From Vitrella brassicaformis CCMP3155 (taxonomy: Eukaryota; Protista; Chromerida), in contig CDMY01000571.1 of the NCBI GenBank assembly GCA_001179505.1, forward strand, positions 267,702-331,701: DNA of 64,000 bases. The letters are read 5' to 3'. The position numbers were made by a program, and so were the translations under genes. Shown here piece after piece: positions 28,273-50,324 of this stretch. Position 1 is the stretch's first letter; each line of letters begins with the position of its first letter. The notes under the pieces are model-generated. The model saw only the letters and a list, made by a program, of their open reading frames with translations, searched no databases and had not been told where the DNA came from.

Positions 28273-28571
28273 NNNNNNNNNNNNNNNNNNNNNNNNNNNN
28301 NNNNNNNNNNNNNNNNNNNNNNNNNNNNNNNNNNNNNNNNNNNNNNNNNNNNNNNNNNNNNNNNNNNNNNNNNNNNNNNNNNNNNNNNNNNNNNNNNNNN
28401 NNNNNNNNNNNNNNNNNNNNNNNNNNNNNNNNNNNNNNNNNNNNNNNNNNNNNNNNNNNNNNNNNNNNNNNNNNNNNNNNNNNNNNNNNNNNNNNNNNNN
28501 NNNNNNNNNNNNNNNNNNNNNNNNNNNNNNNNNNNNNNNNNNNNNNNNNNNNNNNNNNNNNNNNNNNNNNN
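28273..28571. other. Assembly gap (N run)
   Basis: Run of N, flanked by (GATG)n, (GAAT)n and TA-rich microsatellites. Confidence 1.
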
Positions 28572-28920
28572 NGGGCGATCTTTGCCGGCTTGAAGCGGAT
28601 ATCTATGTACGTACGTACTTACGTATATATATACGGATACATACGGATACCTACATACATATATGTATATATATATGGACACATAGATATGCAGAGGGCA
28701 TATGTATATGAACGTGTATACGTACGTATAGAGACGGACGGACGGAGGGGTATGGAGATAGATATAGAGAGAGGGGTGGAGGGGTATGAAGGCACCGGCT
28801 GAGCCAGCCTAATCTACATGCGCACACCACACAAACGCACATCCCACGCATCCCCCCCCCTCTCTCCCCCCCCCTCTCTGGCTGCGATGCACCTGCTTAA
28901 ACGCCCTATCTGTTATGATG

Positions 28921-34575: not shown

Positions 34576-36112
34576 ATGAGTCAGTGTGCGGGTGCTGCCG
34601 GCACCGCGCGTCAGCGAGGGCTTTTGAGGAGTCAGGCTGGGATACGCCCTGGTGCTGGGGGAAAGGGTGGGGCGGCAGGGAGGGCGCGCAAACCGCCAGA
34701 AGGTTCCTCAGGAGGGCATTCCGGTGACGCCCATGTGGTGGAGGGGAGGCGGAACAAGTGCTGCATATGCCAGGAGGCGAGAGACGATACCGATAAGGTG
34801 CGTGAGACCAACTGATGCTGTGTTGAGGAGTCCCTGCATCCTTTGTCTTGTGTGCAGGGCATACTCTCCTGTGGGCATGAATTTTGCTTTGATTGCATTG
34901 CGCAAGTAAGCACAGACACTTAAGGGCAGAGAGAACCTGATCAATCCCGTAGCGCATGCATGAATGTGTCGGTGTCTTGTTTCCGTTTCCATTTCCAGGC
35001 TTTTATCGCTCGCACCAAGGCCGGCCATGCGTGCCAGTGCCCGCTCTGCCACCAGAGCAAAGTCAGCCCCATCGTCACGCGCGAGACTCTCGTCCGCACG
35101 ACGAGGTCCAGGAAGCGCAAGGCCCAGGACATCTCCGAGGAGGAGGGCGACCCTTCCTCATCGGAGGGGTATGCTGTGCGCGTCGAGGACAAGTTGTAAG
35201 CCGCATGCACGGAAAGAAAGGAGTCTTGCTCACACACAGCACTACTCATTGCATGCTGTCATGCTGTCTGTCTGTGGTATTGACCATCGATTGCAGCGAG
35301 GTCCGTGTGAATGAGGACGGCGTTGAGGAGGTGTGGCGGATCTCCAAACAGGACCTCTCACACAAGTATGTACACGCGGACGCACTCACCTGCAGACAGC
35401 GCACAGCACATCCCCGGTGTGTGTCCATCCATCTCTTTCTGTGCAGAGGTTTCAGAGGGCCGATGAAGGGCGGGGAGATGTGGCCGCCGGCCGATTTTGA
35501 TGTGGATCAGTTTATGGAGGTCATGTCGGACGCGGACATCGACTACGTCACTCGCAAGGCCGTGTCAGTGCACCACAAGTGGACGGAGGACTCTCAGATG
35601 AGAAAGTTTCGCCGACTGCAGACCGGTACAGAAGAGTGACGGCAGACACTCGGAGTAAACGACCCCTGCCCATCCCATCTTGTGTGTGTGTGCACGTGTG
35701 TAATGCTTCTCAGTTATGGATACGCTGACTGCGCAGAAGGAGTACTGTGAGGTGGAGAGGATCAAGGAGATGATCGACTGGCCAGGTAAACGACGCGGGG
35801 GATGTCCGCCATATCTCTGTCTCTGCCTCTCTCTCTGTGCATTGATCAACAGAGCCCGGCGTAGGGGCGTGGAACAGGACGCACCATCGTGGGCACATCG
35901 ACGGCGCGCTGACTCAGCAGTGGGTCCGCGAGGGCAAGCACAAGCACTTCCACAAAGATTTCTACGACCGCTCCCACTGGACAGCCTATCAGTTCATGGA
36001 CGCCGAGCTGCTATGCGACCAGCAGCAGACGCGCCGGCTGAAGCGCTCCACAAGGGACCTGCTCTACCAACACGATGTCAACTGTGTCCTCACCTCAGCC
36101 TGGCGACCATAG
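34576..36112 (+). CDS. RING-HC (C3HC4) zinc-finger protein, candidate E3 ligase
   Basis: Spliced CCIC-QEARDDTDKGILS-CGHEFCFDC-IAQAFIARTKAGHACQ-CPLC, followed by basic RSRKRK and an uncharacterised C-terminal half ending ...SAWRP*. Confidence 0.8.
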
Positions 36113-46338: not shown

Positions 46339-46705
46339 ATCTATCGGGCAAATGGATGGGGTGGGATGGGATGAATGGATCGGCTCTGTGTGCCACTGCA
46401 GCGCCACTGCCAGATCTCTGCTCAGATCCTTATCTGACAATACAGAAAGCGTATGCGAAGGCACAGGAGATTCATCCGGGTTGATTCATATGCGTTCTCG
46501 ACTTGGCGAGCTAATGCTTCGGTCCGTTGTAGCTCGCTCTCAAAGCACAACGGCTACACCCATCCTCACCGGCTCTCTCCCCTCTTGAAGTGTGGATTCT
46601 ATCGCATTATCGCATCTGTGAGTCAGACTTGACTGCCTATTCATCCCTTGTCTTGCTTCTCTTCTCTTGCCTGACTGACTGACACCGCTGCCACCACCAA
46701 CCACC

Positions 46706-49129
46706 ATGCGGACCCTCTCCCTCGCCATCCTGACACTCTCCCTCTGCTTATGCTGCATCGCCGGTGAGCAGCGTGAGACAAGCACAGACAAGCACACATG
46801 CATCGGCATCCCGCACATCTGTGCCTGTGTGTGTGTGTGTGTGTGTCCAGATGCGACGTCCCTCCGTCGCACCCAGGGAGCCGAGGCAGGGAGCGGTGGG
46901 TACAGCGCCGACCGCATGCCCGACCCTGCAGAGGCAGCCGAGGCAGCCCCCGTCCCTGAGGTGGTCGATGTCCCGCCTGAAGGCGTCGAGGAGATCCCTG
47001 CCCCAGCCAACGTGACAGCCAACGCCACTGCCGCAGAGGAGATCCCCATGGCCCTCCCCGCTGATCCCGCAGCCCAGCCTGTCGACCCCGCAGCTGGAGG
47101 CGGCACTCGCCTGCGTCGTCTGCAGGCAGCGGGAGCCCCCCCTCCCCCACCGGCTGCTCAGGTCCTTCAGGAGGAGCCGGGCGCCAACCAGACGGCAGCC
47201 AACGCCACCGATAGCGCTCTCGGTGAAGATGGACAGACCAGGCGTCTGCAAGACATGTCGGCGGCTGGTGAGACGAGCATCCCGGAAGTGGCGCAGAACC
47301 TCACCACCAACACCACCGGCGCGACCAGACGTCTGCAGGAGACAGGGGCTGCCGGAGTGCCGGTGGGGGCTCCTGAAGCAGTGGAGGCAGCCAACATGAC
47401 CAACGTCACCGACCCGGCCATGGGGGTGCCAGCGGACGGCAGCACCAGGCGTCTGCAGCAGGACTTGAGCACTCTCCCGGCTGAGCAGACGCCAGTGGAG
47501 GCCAACGTGACCGCCAATGCCACCGAGGGCACCACAGAGGGCGGCGTGAGACGCATGCAGGACCCGGTGGTGCCTGGGGAAGCACCAGTGGACCCAGCCG
47601 TCAACGAGACAGCCATCAACACCACCGTCGAGGGGGCTCCGGGCCAGGGCGGCGTGAGACGCATGCAGCTGCCGGAGCCCGCACAGGAGGCCGCTGCCGA
47701 GCCTGCAGCTGAAGGCGTTGAGGGCGATGTGCCGGCCGGCGAGGAGGCAGCCAACGTGACAGCGGTGGGGCCCGTCCCGGTTGTGGAGCCCATCAACGCG
47801 ACAGAGCTCGAGGAAACGGCGCCCGAGATTGCCGACGAGGTCAGCGAGGCCATCAACCCGGCGGAGGCCGAGGAGGCAGCGGAGGGCGGCGAGAGAGTCC
47901 GACGCCTTCGTCGCCGCGTGCAGAGCTACAGCGACACGAGCATCCCTGCAGCTGAGCAGCAAGTGCCGGAAGTGGCGCAGAACATCACCAACACCACCGG
48001 CGCGACCAGACGTCTGCAGGAGACAGGGGCTGCCGAAGTGCCGGTGGGGGCTCCTGAAGCAGTGGAGGCAGCAAACATGACCAACGCCACCGACCCGGCC
48101 ACGGGCATGCCAGCGGGCGGCAGCACCAGGCGTCTGCAGGACTTGGGCACGCTCCCGGCTGAGCAGACGCCAGTGGAGGCCAACGTGACCGCCAATGCCA
48201 CCGAGGGCACCACAGAGGGCGGTGTGAGACGCATGCAGGACTTGGGTGGGGCCGCTCCCCCACCCCCTGAGGCCAACGTGACGACCAACATGAGCGACGC
48301 AGCCGTCCAGCCCCCTGATGCCGGCACGAGGCGCATGCAGACGGTGGGTGGTGCTGATGCTGCGCAGCAGCAGGCCGGGTACGTGGCGGCAGAGGAGCAG
48401 GCCATGGCCAACGTGACCAACGCCACTGACCCGGTCAGCCAGGGCGGCACCAGGCGCATGCAGGACAACATGGGCGGGGTGATGGAGATGCCCGTCAACG
48501 AGACCAACACGACCACCGAAGGCCAGATGGGCCAGGGCCAGGGCGGGATCAGGCGCCGCCGACTGCAGACGTGTGAGTGTGGACACGACACACAGCCGAC
48601 ATACATGGGTGTGGGGTGCATGGTTGTATGTATGTCCGTGTGTGCGCGTGTGTGTTCAGTCGATGGTGCTGAGGGTCCTGATGCTGCCGGCACCGAGATG
48701 CGTGATGACAGCCTCGGCTATGATGCCGCCCAGACCGAAGACCAAGCAGGTACCGTACCACGTGAGGCGGTGCACCCCACGCAGAATCACGCTTGACAAT
48801 GGATGTCTCTTGTCTGTGGCCTCCGTCAGAGTCGGTGTCCGGCGGAGTGCCACAACAGGGGACTGAGGTGGGTGCTGGTGCTGCTGGCGCTGGTGCCGGA
48901 GAGGAGGATTTCCCCACCGCTGAAGAAATCACTCCCGCACCCGAAGGTCAGTCACGCACTCCCGTCCGTCTGGACATCACATCTGTCTCCGCGCACTCAT
49001 CCCTGTATGTCTGTCCCCGCCTGTGTGTCTGCAGAGGTTCTGGCTGAGCCTGAGCAGCAGGTACCCGGATTCCTCGAGGGCGAGCTCGTTGGTGGACCTG
49101 ACAGCGAAGCCCGCACTGGTGGAGAGTAG
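46706..49129 (+). CDS. Secreted acidic, N-glycosylation-rich repetitive protein with 13 RR(L/M) sites; candidate polyprotein
   Basis: Signal peptide MRTLSLAILTLSLCLCCIA, an in-frame 87-nt intron, a long repetitive exon to about 48572, then three short exons ending ...EARTGGE*. No TM segment or GPI signal seen. Confidence 0.85.
47282..48241 (+). repeat. Internal duplication of about 280 nt (47282-47563 vs 47966-48241) within the repetitive secreted protein
   Basis: PEVAQNLTTNTTGATRRLQETGAAGVPVGAPEAVEAANMTNVTDP...EGGVRRMQD vs PEVAQNITNTTGATRRLQETGAAEVPVGAPEAVEAANMTNATDP...EGGVRRMQD; nearly identical at the DNA level. Confidence 0.92.
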
Positions 49130-50024
49130 ACAGACAGACCCGTGGTATGTCGTTTTGTTTCGTTCCGTGTCGTGGCGTGAGCGGTTTTACATAGGTGTTT
49201 GCTTCAATCAACGTGTGCGTGCAGATGTGTGTGTGTGTGTGTGTGTGTGTTTGGCTGACTGACTGACTGACTGCATGGATGGATGGACACCGACAGACCG
49301 ACCGACGAGTGCGTTTTTTCCACACGGACGTGCGCGCCCTCTTGAATGACATGCGGGCACACGTGTATGGCTGGCTGCATGTGTTGTGGTCAAGCGTGCC
49401 TGTGTGTGATTGGTGTGGGGGGGCGGAGTTGGGTGGGGTGAGCGCAGCCATGCGGACACGCATCGCATCGGTCGACGTGTCCGTTCTGTTTTGCCGGCAT
49501 GTGTGCGCCTTCCTTCACTCGATGGAATCGGTTGCGGGGCGTTTTTTCGCTGCACACACACACGCGCACACATTGTCACGCATTTTGCCATGACCTCACT
49601 AACTCACTGCATGGTGTTGTCATTCGTTCTGCTTCACGTGCTGGTTGCTTGGTTCATCCACACAACTTGCTGCAGGCTGGGCATTTTGTACATACCCATG
49701 GATGCGAAGTCAGTCATGTTAGTTACACGCCCACCCGACCGACCCATAGACGTGCCTTGCTCGATGGCTCGATGGCCTGATTGCTCGATTGAGCACTTTT
49801 GACACACCGTGGCCTGCCTCCCTCCGTGGTTTGATCATCATCCATCCACTCACCACTCACTCGCTGCCTGGCTCACTTTTGGCCGCCGAATCGAGCGTTG
49901 GCTGAGCGTTTATTCAGTTTCTTCTCGTTGGCTTCGTCTGTGTGTGCACTCATCACTCATCGGAGAAGACAGGGAGGGCATGCACGTGACTTCGGCGCAC
50001 ACAGACAGACAATGACGGGGGGGG

Positions 50025-50324
50025 NNNNNNNNNNNNNNNNNNNNNNNNNNNNNNNNNNNNNNNNNNNNNNNNNNNNNNNNNNNNNNNNNNNNNNNNNNNN
50101 NNNNNNNNNNNNNNNNNNNNNNNNNNNNNNNNNNNNNNNNNNNNNNNNNNNNNNNNNNNNNNNNNNNNNNNNNNNNNNNNNNNNNNNNNNNNNNNNNNNN
50201 NNNNNNNNNNNNNNNNNNNNNNNNNNNNNNNNNNNNNNNNNNNNNNNNNNNNNNNNNNNNNNNNNNNNNNNNNNNNNNNNNNNNNNNNNNNNNNNNNNNN
50301 NNNNNNNNNNNNNNNNNNNNNNNN
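50025..50324. other. Assembly gap (N run)
   Basis: Run of N flanked by G-rich ends. Confidence 1.

Follow-up and report, generated by a model that had tools for sequence, protein, structure and literature searches.

A transcribed Vitrella brassicaformis gene encodes a predicted secretory polyprotein with 13 RR(L/M)Q sites, candidate targets of plasmepsin V/ASP5-type cleavage

We analyzed a 64,000-nucleotide stretch of the genome of the free-living chromerid Vitrella brassicaformis CCMP3155 (GenBank assembly GCA_001179505.1, contig CDMY01000571.1, positions 267,702 to 331,701 of the forward strand; hereafter the window), which contains a gene for an acidic repeat protein whose units end in the motif RR(L/M)Q. 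This gene, hereafter the repeat-precursor gene after its proposed function, is real and transcribed, and its spliced product of 693 aa carries 13 such sites. We put at about even the chance that the product is a multi-site precursor cut within the secretory pathway, most likely after Leu or Met, by a membrane aspartic protease of the plasmepsin V (PMV)/ASP5 type. For the parts of this reading, cutting at the sites by some secretory protease is fairly probable and, should cutting occur, the enzyme is moderately likely to be of the PMV/ASP5 type. The precursor reading is supported by the motif itself, which occurs far beyond chance and is the most conserved part of the units, and by an internal duplication in which nonsynonymous divergence has spared sites and sequons. 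Further support comes from two PMV/ASP5-type proteases encoded in the genome and a complex model of one of them, with no P-domain or MBTPS1_3rd domain found in exon-by-exon searches, and from reuse of RR(L/M), with Leu/Met swaps, in a second pair of proteins.

The proposed repeat-precursor gene and its product

The original prediction, made from the letters of the window, had listed 13 RR(L/M)Q sites, and all 13 are in frame from position 46706 and match the predicted order exactly (RRLQA, RRLQD, RRLQE, RRLQQ, RRMQD, RRMQL, RRLRRRVQ, RRLQE, RRLQD, RRMQD, RRMQT, RRMQD and RRRRLQT; Table 1). The sites cover residues 108-592 of the protein. Arg-Arg occurs at 13 of 13 junctions and Gln follows RR[LMV] at every one, with RRL in eight sites and RRM in five; at site 7, RRVQ comes after an RRL. 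Units end in G-x-(T/V)-R-R-(L/M/V)-Q and are homologous, being 26-58% identical to the first unit, with a consensus that opens with acidic residues and continues via P-x-x-A and N-x-T-N-x-T to G-x-T-R-R-L-Q. Invariant columns in the unit alignment are limited to the two Arg, and their codons vary among sites (AGA, AGG, CGT, CGC, CGA) while the residues stay constant. When the mature sequence was shuffled 20,000 times with its composition preserved, RR[LMV]Q appeared 0.02 times on average and at most twice, compared with the 13 observed. As predicted, Arg in the repeat region is nearly confined to the sites, which hold 35 of the 39 Arg of the spliced protein and leave only R41 outside them within that region. 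Exactly two N-x-S/T sequons are present in each of the 13 units (26 in total), which agrees with the prediction that the spacers usually carry two; the predicted spacer length of 30-40 aa describes most units (11 measure 29-42 aa) but not the two of 83-85 aa.

The three-unit duplication allowed a comparison of copies that are 90-95% identical in nucleotide sequence. Codon by codon, 13 nonsynonymous and 6 synonymous changes separate the two copies. RR[LM]Q, G-x-T/V and the Asn and Thr of the sequons are free of these changes, and two lie at the free x of sequons. With ~30 of 101 codons counted as constrained, our own arithmetic gives a chance of ~0.01 that the changes would avoid them. Because the changes spare the sites and the Asn and Thr of the sequons, we conclude that the spacers drift while sites and sequons are kept.

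The rest of the protein fits the multi-site precursor layout that had been predicted, namely a signal peptide, 13 site-ended units and a tail. The predicted signal peptide starts with M-R, has a 15-aa hydrophobic core (Kyte-Doolittle mean 2.59) that forms the only hydrophobic segment of the protein, and was called heuristically from hydrophobicity and the C-I-A sequence. The mature chain would begin D-A-T-S-L-R-R-T-Q, which places a degenerate RRTQ lacking Leu five residues past the signal peptide. Past site 13, the C-terminal tail of 101 aa has a net charge of -23 and features no sequon, transmembrane segment or GPI-like end. Lys, His and Trp are absent from the protein, Cys is limited to the signal peptide, and the composition is rich in Pro, Ala, Thr and Glu. 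The Atlas model of P0002, a transcript-derived database version of the protein, shows no fold (mean pLDDT 0.37), which suggests an intrinsically disordered chain. With its predicted signal peptide, no second hydrophobic segment and no plastid-type transit peptide, the protein is predicted to be secreted, as originally proposed. It is probably also N-glycosylated, judging from its sequons, which can be used because STT3 is present in the genome.

The gene has five exons (Table 1). Introns 2-4 were directly confirmed by spliced contigs from transcript runs X1 and X2, and all four junctions of the gene model also occur in P0002, a complete MMETSP open reading frame (ORF). An X1 contig aligned to 46557-46763 and 46855-47334 with 4 letters between them, and no joint was listed at intron 1 because its (TG)n stretch was skipped. 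Contigs from runs X3 and X4 are unspliced across the same introns and therefore represent genomic DNA. A listed ORF of 696 aa runs on through introns 1 and 2 and was therefore rejected as the product. Retention of either intron would keep the frame and add 29 Cys/Val-rich residues, as each is 87 nt, in frame and stop-free; these two introns of equal length are also both (TG)n-rich. The two database versions of the protein, P0001 and P0002, are both distorted by the internal duplication, in that P0002 is missing the 227 aa between the duplicate copies and P0001 has copy-1 sequence in the copy-2 position. Public gene models of the locus may likewise undercount sites.

These data bear on whether the gene is an artefact, i.e., a repeat without coding function taken for an ORF, or a mis-targeted plastid protein with a bipartite leader. 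GC-rich repeats often yield long chance ORFs, and several overlapping ORFs lie on both strands of this locus. However, the four introns are spliced as the + frame requires, in two transcript data sets and the complete MMETSP ORF, and the sequons and sites are kept through nonsynonymous divergence. Past the signal peptide, the chain opens with Asp and continues as an acidic region that does not resemble a transit peptide, and for this reason both a plastid-targeted protein with a bipartite leader and a dinoflagellate-type plastid polyprotein were rejected. An artefactual or mis-targeted product, already largely refuted by these observations, is very improbable.

Downstream of the gene, transcript contigs also cover 49291-49600, just past a (TG)n repeat (49217-49290), with an X1 word depth of 175 compared with 95 for the gene; they represent either a long 3' untranslated region (UTR) or a separate transcript. 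The window contains two assembly gaps of 300 N each (28273-28572 and 50025-50324).

Candidate proteases and proposed processing

About a dozen aspartic protease loci are present in the V. brassicaformis genome, and two of them encode PMV/ASP5-type enzymes, which substantiates the protease context that the original prediction had assumed. These two, P0003 and the C688 protease, are ~51% identical to each other. P0003, which NCBI lists as a protein of V. brassicaformis CCMP3155, combines a signal peptide and a C-terminal membrane span with the catalytic motifs DTGS and DSGT, and its best solved match is plasmepsin V (1e-61; next family, 8e-12). In a HMMER alignment, P0003 conserves Glu and Gln at the positions, by our own count, of Glu141 and Gln183, which are S3-pocket residues of P. 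vivax PMV (PMC9102085). The C688 gene, whose best match is P. vivax plasmepsin V (4e-39; next family, 3e-7), encodes DTGS, a Cys-rich insert and a second DSG motif, with a C-terminal membrane span in a later exon. Relatives of these enzymes occur in dinoflagellates, coccidia and, more distantly, diatoms. Aspartic proteases on contigs C266 and C646 were rejected as PMV-like, being pepsin/cathepsin-like or PMX-like.

We modeled P0003 (residues 36-415) in complex with a 34-aa stretch around site 4 (encoded by 47402-47503) alongside three controls. The complex scored 0.83, compared with 0.07 for the best control; in the benchmark for this score, 51 of 78 solved complexes reached it, as did 2 of 108 mismatched pairs. 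Runs shared at least 54% of contacts, and the pLDDT of the partner was at least 46. The confident interface comprises peptide residues 13-22 (G-S-T-R-R-L-Q-Q-D-L), which lie in the active-site cleft of the model. There, Leu18 of RRLQ contacts both catalytic residues, Asp72 and Asp276, which suggests a register for cutting after Leu, as in the Toxoplasma export element (TEXEL). The model indicates that RRL/Q is compatible with the cleft and is not proof of cleavage.

In the processing route that we infer, the signal peptide would be removed first, and the 13 G-x-(T/V)-R-R-(L/M/V)-Q sites would then be cut in the endoplasmic reticulum or Golgi. The bond most likely to be cut would be the one after Leu/Met, and the enzyme would most likely be one of the two membrane-bound PMV/ASP5-type proteases of Vitrella. 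Such cutting would release ~13 acidic glycopeptides, mostly of 29-42 aa with two sequons each, along with the acidic tail of 101 aa. Every fragment would start with Gln, and this residue could be cyclised to pyroglutamate since glutaminyl cyclases of the plant type are encoded at two loci in the genome. That the products serve in the matrix or wall is a guess.

Alternatively, a subtilase-family serine protease might cut the same precursor, either after RR in kexin-like fashion (RR/LQ) or after Gln by the rule of site-1 protease (S1P). The genome has at least 30 subtilase loci, and ten long S8 reading frames show Peptidase_S8 only. Substrates of S1P (SKI-1/S1P, plant SBT6.1) such as RRLL, RRIL and RSVL follow the pattern R-X-aliphatic-Z, with Z any residue except a few, and RRLQ and RRVQ also fit (PMC8310232). 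Eight of the sites conform to this rule, having Leu or Val at P2. Plant peptide precursors mature through S1P-type cleavage at RRIL/RRLL-like sequences, and RRIL/RRNL ends are absent from mature diatom silaffins (PMC4557024). Unlike at usual S1P sites, however, P2 is Met in the other five, which is atypical, and the cut would fall after Gln. The original prediction had noted that the dibasic sites fit kexin/furin-type processing; Arg-Arg is indeed present at all 13 junctions, but the P-domain that marks kexin/furin convertases (PF01483) had no match in an exon-by-exon search of this intron-rich genome, and kexin needs nothing past RR, which leaves the invariant (L/M)Q unexplained. The MBTPS1_3rd domain of S1P (PF23094) likewise had no genome match in an exon-by-exon search run without a positive control. 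Furthermore, BACE-like aspartic proteases typically show such alternation of Leu and Met at their S1 pocket. The APP beta-site, for example, has Met, and its Swedish variant has Leu. Taken together, we regard a subtilase as an unlikely enzyme for these sites.

Several points weigh against cutting by a PMV/ASP5-type protease. In tested peptides, ASP5 strictly needs Leu at P1 (PMC4764566), and in the Vitrella protein this residue would be Met at five sites and Val at one. An invariant Gln is not among the known requirements of PMV or ASP5 for the Plasmodium export element (PEXEL) or TEXEL, and the known substrates of these enzymes carry one or two sites, not 13. The complex scoring is uncalibrated for peptides and disordered partners and may echo solved protease-inhibitor complexes. 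The genome also has the 30 or more subtilase loci, and the empty domain searches carry the limits of an exon-by-exon design and, for S1P, of the missing positive control. The sequons lie 4-12 residues upstream of the sites and, if glycosylated, could hinder a protease.

In a different reading, the product would be an uncleaved, mucin-like, N-glycosylated acidic protein of the surface or wall, with the RR(L/M)Q patches serving as binding or cross-linking points, e.g., through ionic contacts with acidic wall polysaccharides. A disordered Pro/Ala/Thr/Glu-rich chain with 26 sequons and a signal peptide is consistent with such a protein. However, if the patches acted through charge alone, the invariant Gln, the G-x-T/V lead-in and the restriction to Leu and Met would be unnecessary, and the model docks the motif in a protease cleft. 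In addition, as described below, RR(L/M) is found again in unrelated secreted proteins of Vitrella, where it follows pro-like units and precedes a Cys-rich body. Cross-linking by transglutaminase via the invariant Gln is unlikely because the protein has no Lys. We therefore consider an uncleaved protein rather unlikely, and below we compare the favored reading, a precursor cut by a PMV/ASP5-type enzyme, with other genes and systems.

Motif reuse and comparison with known systems

We scanned the genome for other secreted proteins with multiple RR(L/M)Q sites, which the original prediction had proposed as a check. A DNA pattern of two RR(L/M)Q codon motifs spaced 60-140 nt apart gave 37 matches compared with 6 for the control, and 10 of the 37 lie in the repeat-precursor gene. 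The scan was productive in one case, a gene on contig C388 (L012); the other 14 of the 15 paired matches that we read elsewhere are out of frame or in short frames and unconvincing. L012 encodes a signal peptide, the sequence S-T-R-R-S-L-Q, four or five units that each contain one N-x-T, then a linker rich in Thr and a Cys-rich body without a Pfam match. Its units end in RRRRLQ, RRMQ, RRRLQ and RRRQLQ. A Vitrella paralog of 298 aa, P0057, is 55% identical and keeps the sites. In the alignment of the two, RRRRLQ corresponds to RRRMQ, RRMQ to RRLH and RRRLQ to RRRLQ, which indicates that Leu and Met are interchangeable at one site. The sites of the pair read RR(L/M)(Q/H/S), such that Gln is preferred but not obligatory. 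L012 and P0057 are unrelated to the repeat-precursor gene and reuse RR(L/M) after N-x-T units.

The extended single-site pattern G-(G/A)-(T/V/I)-R-R-(L/M)-Q matched the genome 26 times, compared with 3 for the reversed control, with 6 matches in the repeat-precursor gene and 20 outside it. Exact codon matches elsewhere include C604:8012, C1057:100073, C571:137842, C474:4092, C182:124134, C428:68700, C781:102886 and C593:11338, and one of the 20 lies 177 kb upstream on the same contig. Within the window, an open frame at 34953-35636 (+), upstream of an expansin-GH10 gene, ends in ...K-F-R-R-L-Q-T-G-T-E-E.

The original prediction had compared the sites with TEXEL, PEXEL and diatom RXL motifs. 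ASP5 requires Arg-Arg-Leu at P3, P2 and P1, with P1' and P2' free (PMC4764566). RRL is present at eight of the Vitrella sites and RRM at five, and Leu and Met swap at aligned sites of L012 and P0057. The Toxoplasma substrates GRA16, MYR1, GRA44 and LCAT are secretory proteins in which RRL is cut after Leu by the Golgi aspartic protease ASP5. The Vitrella protein resembles them in that TEXEL sites can occur anywhere in the chain, some substrates have two, and P1' and P2' are free (PMC4764566, PMC6212819); moreover, Vitrella has two enzymes of the family, and the model docks RRL/Q in the same register. Toxoplasma N-terminomics also listed, without validation, a wild-type-only peptide that starts with Gln directly after RRL (PMC6212819). 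In contrast to these substrates, the Vitrella protein has 13 sites, five of them with Met, an invariant P1' Gln and a conserved upstream G-x-T/V, and it has no sequence homology to any GRA protein. Because Vitrella is a free-living alga, export into a host cell is not involved.

The PEXEL pentamer R-x-L-x-E/Q/D is found in five of 13 sites (RRLQD twice, RRLQE twice and RRLQQ) but the other eight fail and the positions do not fit. Like PEXEL, those five sites have Arg at P3 and Leu at P1, with Asp, Glu or Gln at P2', and the signal peptide is likewise encoded on a short first exon. However, PEXEL is a single motif near the N-terminus, ~15-30 residues past the signal sequence, and the Vitrella sites begin at residue 108; Gln is invariant at position 4, which PEXEL leaves free, and the sole motif near the signal peptide, RRTQ, has no Leu. 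PMV has been proposed to be an old general secretory maturase (PMC10900883).

The closest overall architecture is found in diatom precursors of silaffin (Sil1p), silacidin and cingulin, which also have a signal peptide, an RXL-like motif and tandem units ended by RR-x-L. Silacidins are reportedly acidic. In Sil1p, an RXL motif follows the signal peptide, the units end in RRIL or RRNL, and the motif is missing from the mature peptides (PMC4557024), so the silaffin parallel drawn in the original prediction is real in layout. In diatoms, RXL has been regarded as a processing signal of general use (PMC4557024). Between these precursors and the Vitrella protein there is analogy rather than membership, as a profile search revealed no sequence relationship, and silaffin units are basic and rich in Lys and Ser whereas the Vitrella units are acidic, contain sequons, have no Lys and involve no silica. 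In EukProt, the diatom Cylindrotheca fusiformis has an aspartic protease, P0045, whose best solved match is plasmepsin V (3e-18), with BACE2 next (1e-8). From its sequence, P0045 is a candidate for the RXL endopeptidase, in the diatom whose silaffin precursor is cut at RRIL/RRNL.

Oomycetes, another SAR lineage, have RxLR effectors with an RxL-type motif past the signal peptide, and PMV-like membrane aspartic proteases, linked to RxLR, were described in oomycetes (clade 5) and a diatom in 2011 (PMC3116508). Those effectors carry a single N-terminal motif and target a host, in contrast to the repeat polyprotein of Vitrella. With respect to layout, the Vitrella protein also resembles fungal Kex2-processed repeat proteins (KEPs). 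These include yeast alpha-factor and Ustilago Rep1 and have a signal peptide and short repeats from which peptides are released at dibasic sites. KEPs are cut at KR or RR alone by a kexin with a P-domain, whereas no P-domain was found in the exon-by-exon search of Vitrella and the motif extends to (L/M)Q.

Our searches for relatives of the repeat-precursor protein returned only the gene itself. Pfam showed no match for the ORF, P0002 or pieces of L012, and a paralog search of the whole genome, 72.7 Mb in 1064 contigs, returned the gene alone. A word search of 5.8 billion proteins matched only the two Vitrella transcript versions, P0001 and P0002, and an exhaustive HMMER search of 1.84 billion protein representatives with a profile of the 13 units recovered P0002 only. 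The Atlas contained no related cluster, and structure matches of the disordered model had TM scores below 0.5. At the sensitivity of these searches, the gene is a Vitrella orphan, and it therefore says nothing by itself about ancestry. The proposed ancestral role for cutting at these sites consequently draws no support from this gene, and the idea rests on the protease family and on other genes that bear RRL. In the literature, we found no report of PEXEL-, TEXEL- or ASP5-type processing in chromerids.

Table 1. Coordinates of the repeat-precursor gene, its sites and other genes discussed (window positions unless a contig or locus is named).
Feature	Position	Strand	Remarks
5' UTR, minimum extent	46557..46705	+	X1 transcript contig starts at 46557 and continues into exon 1
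RR(L/M)Q repeat-precursor gene, coding span	46706-49129	+	5 exons; includes 4 GT..AG introns
Exon 1	46706..46763	+	start codon; signal peptide, residues 1-19, with cut predicted after C-I-A; P0002 junction ...CCIA/DATSL
Intron 1	46764..46850	+	87 nt, GT..AG, (TG)n, in frame, stop-free; P0002 junction, X1 contig flanks both sides
Exon 2	46851..48572	+	short pro-segment ending RRTQ (46865-46876), then 13 related acidic units, two sequons each
Site 1, RRLQ	47114..47125	+	G-G-T-R-L-RRLQ-A
Site 2, RRLQ	47240..47251	+	G-Q-T-RRLQ-D
Duplication of three units, copy 1	47282..47563	+	90-95% nt identity to copy 2
Site 3, RRLQ	47327..47338	+	G-A-T-RRLQ-E
Site 4, RRLQ	47447..47458	+	G-S-T-RRLQ-Q; used in complex model
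Site 5, RRMQ	47549..47560	+	G-G-V-RRMQ-D
Site 6, RRMQ	47657..47668	+	G-G-V-RRMQ-L
Site 7, compound RRL-RRRVQ	47900..47923	+	
Duplication of three units, copy 2	47966..48241	+	transcript assemblies collapse or mix copies (P0001, P0002)
Site 8, RRLQ	48008..48019	+	G-A-T-RRLQ-E
Site 9, RRLQ	48128..48139	+	G-S-T-RRLQ-D
Site 10, RRMQ	48227..48238	+	G-G-V-RRMQ-D
Site 11, RRMQ	48329..48340	+	A-G-T-RRMQ-T
Site 12, RRMQ	48452..48463	+	G-G-T-RRMQ-D
Site 13, RRRRLQ	48551..48568	+	G-G-I-RRRRLQ-T
Intron 2	48573..48659	+	87 nt, GT..AG, in frame, stop-free; joint 48572>48660 in X1, X2
Exon 3	48660..48749	+	acidic tail; X1/X2 contigs, P0002
Intron 3	48750..48829	+	80 nt, GT..AG; joint in X1, X2
Exon 4	48830..48946	+	acidic tail; X1/X2 contigs, P0002
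Intron 4	48947..49034	+	88 nt, GT..AG; joint in X1, X2
Exon 5, coding part with stop codon	49035..49129	+	P0002, gene model
3' UTR, minimum extent	49130..49216	+	transcript contigs end at (TG)n repeat
L012 gene	L012:1067-3030 (= G000:C388:61758-63721)	+	predicted introns ~1208-1266 and ~1905-1974
P0003 gene, PMV/ASP5-type membrane aspartic protease	G000:C231:120956-124338	-	encoded exon by exon on C231
C688 gene, PMV/ASP5-type membrane aspartic protease	G000:C688:131670-133394 (L030)	-	

Implications for the plasmepsin V/ASP5 family

Plasmepsin V and ASP5 are essential or linked to virulence in malaria and Toxoplasma parasites, which makes the role of such enzymes before parasitism a matter of interest. 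We tentatively suggest, as a possibility that we hold with some doubt, that RR(L/M)-directed cutting by PMV/ASP5-type enzymes is a general, prohormone-like maturation code in free-living chromerids that serves many unrelated precursors, with the 13-site polyprotein as its most extreme substrate. On this suggestion, an older system of peptide processing would have given rise to the parasite signals PEXEL and TEXEL, and it may have been shared with diatom RXL and oomycete RxLR because those lineages also carry PMV-like proteases. As a free-living relative that has two enzymes of this type, 13 candidate sites in one protein and unrelated RR(L/M) proteins, Vitrella offers a direct test system. Its substrates could reveal if the code is older than export into host cells, if P1 tolerates Met and if a P1' Gln gives rise to pyroglutamate-capped peptides. 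Furthermore, the finding makes PMV-like proteases candidates for the enzyme that cuts RXL sites in diatoms.

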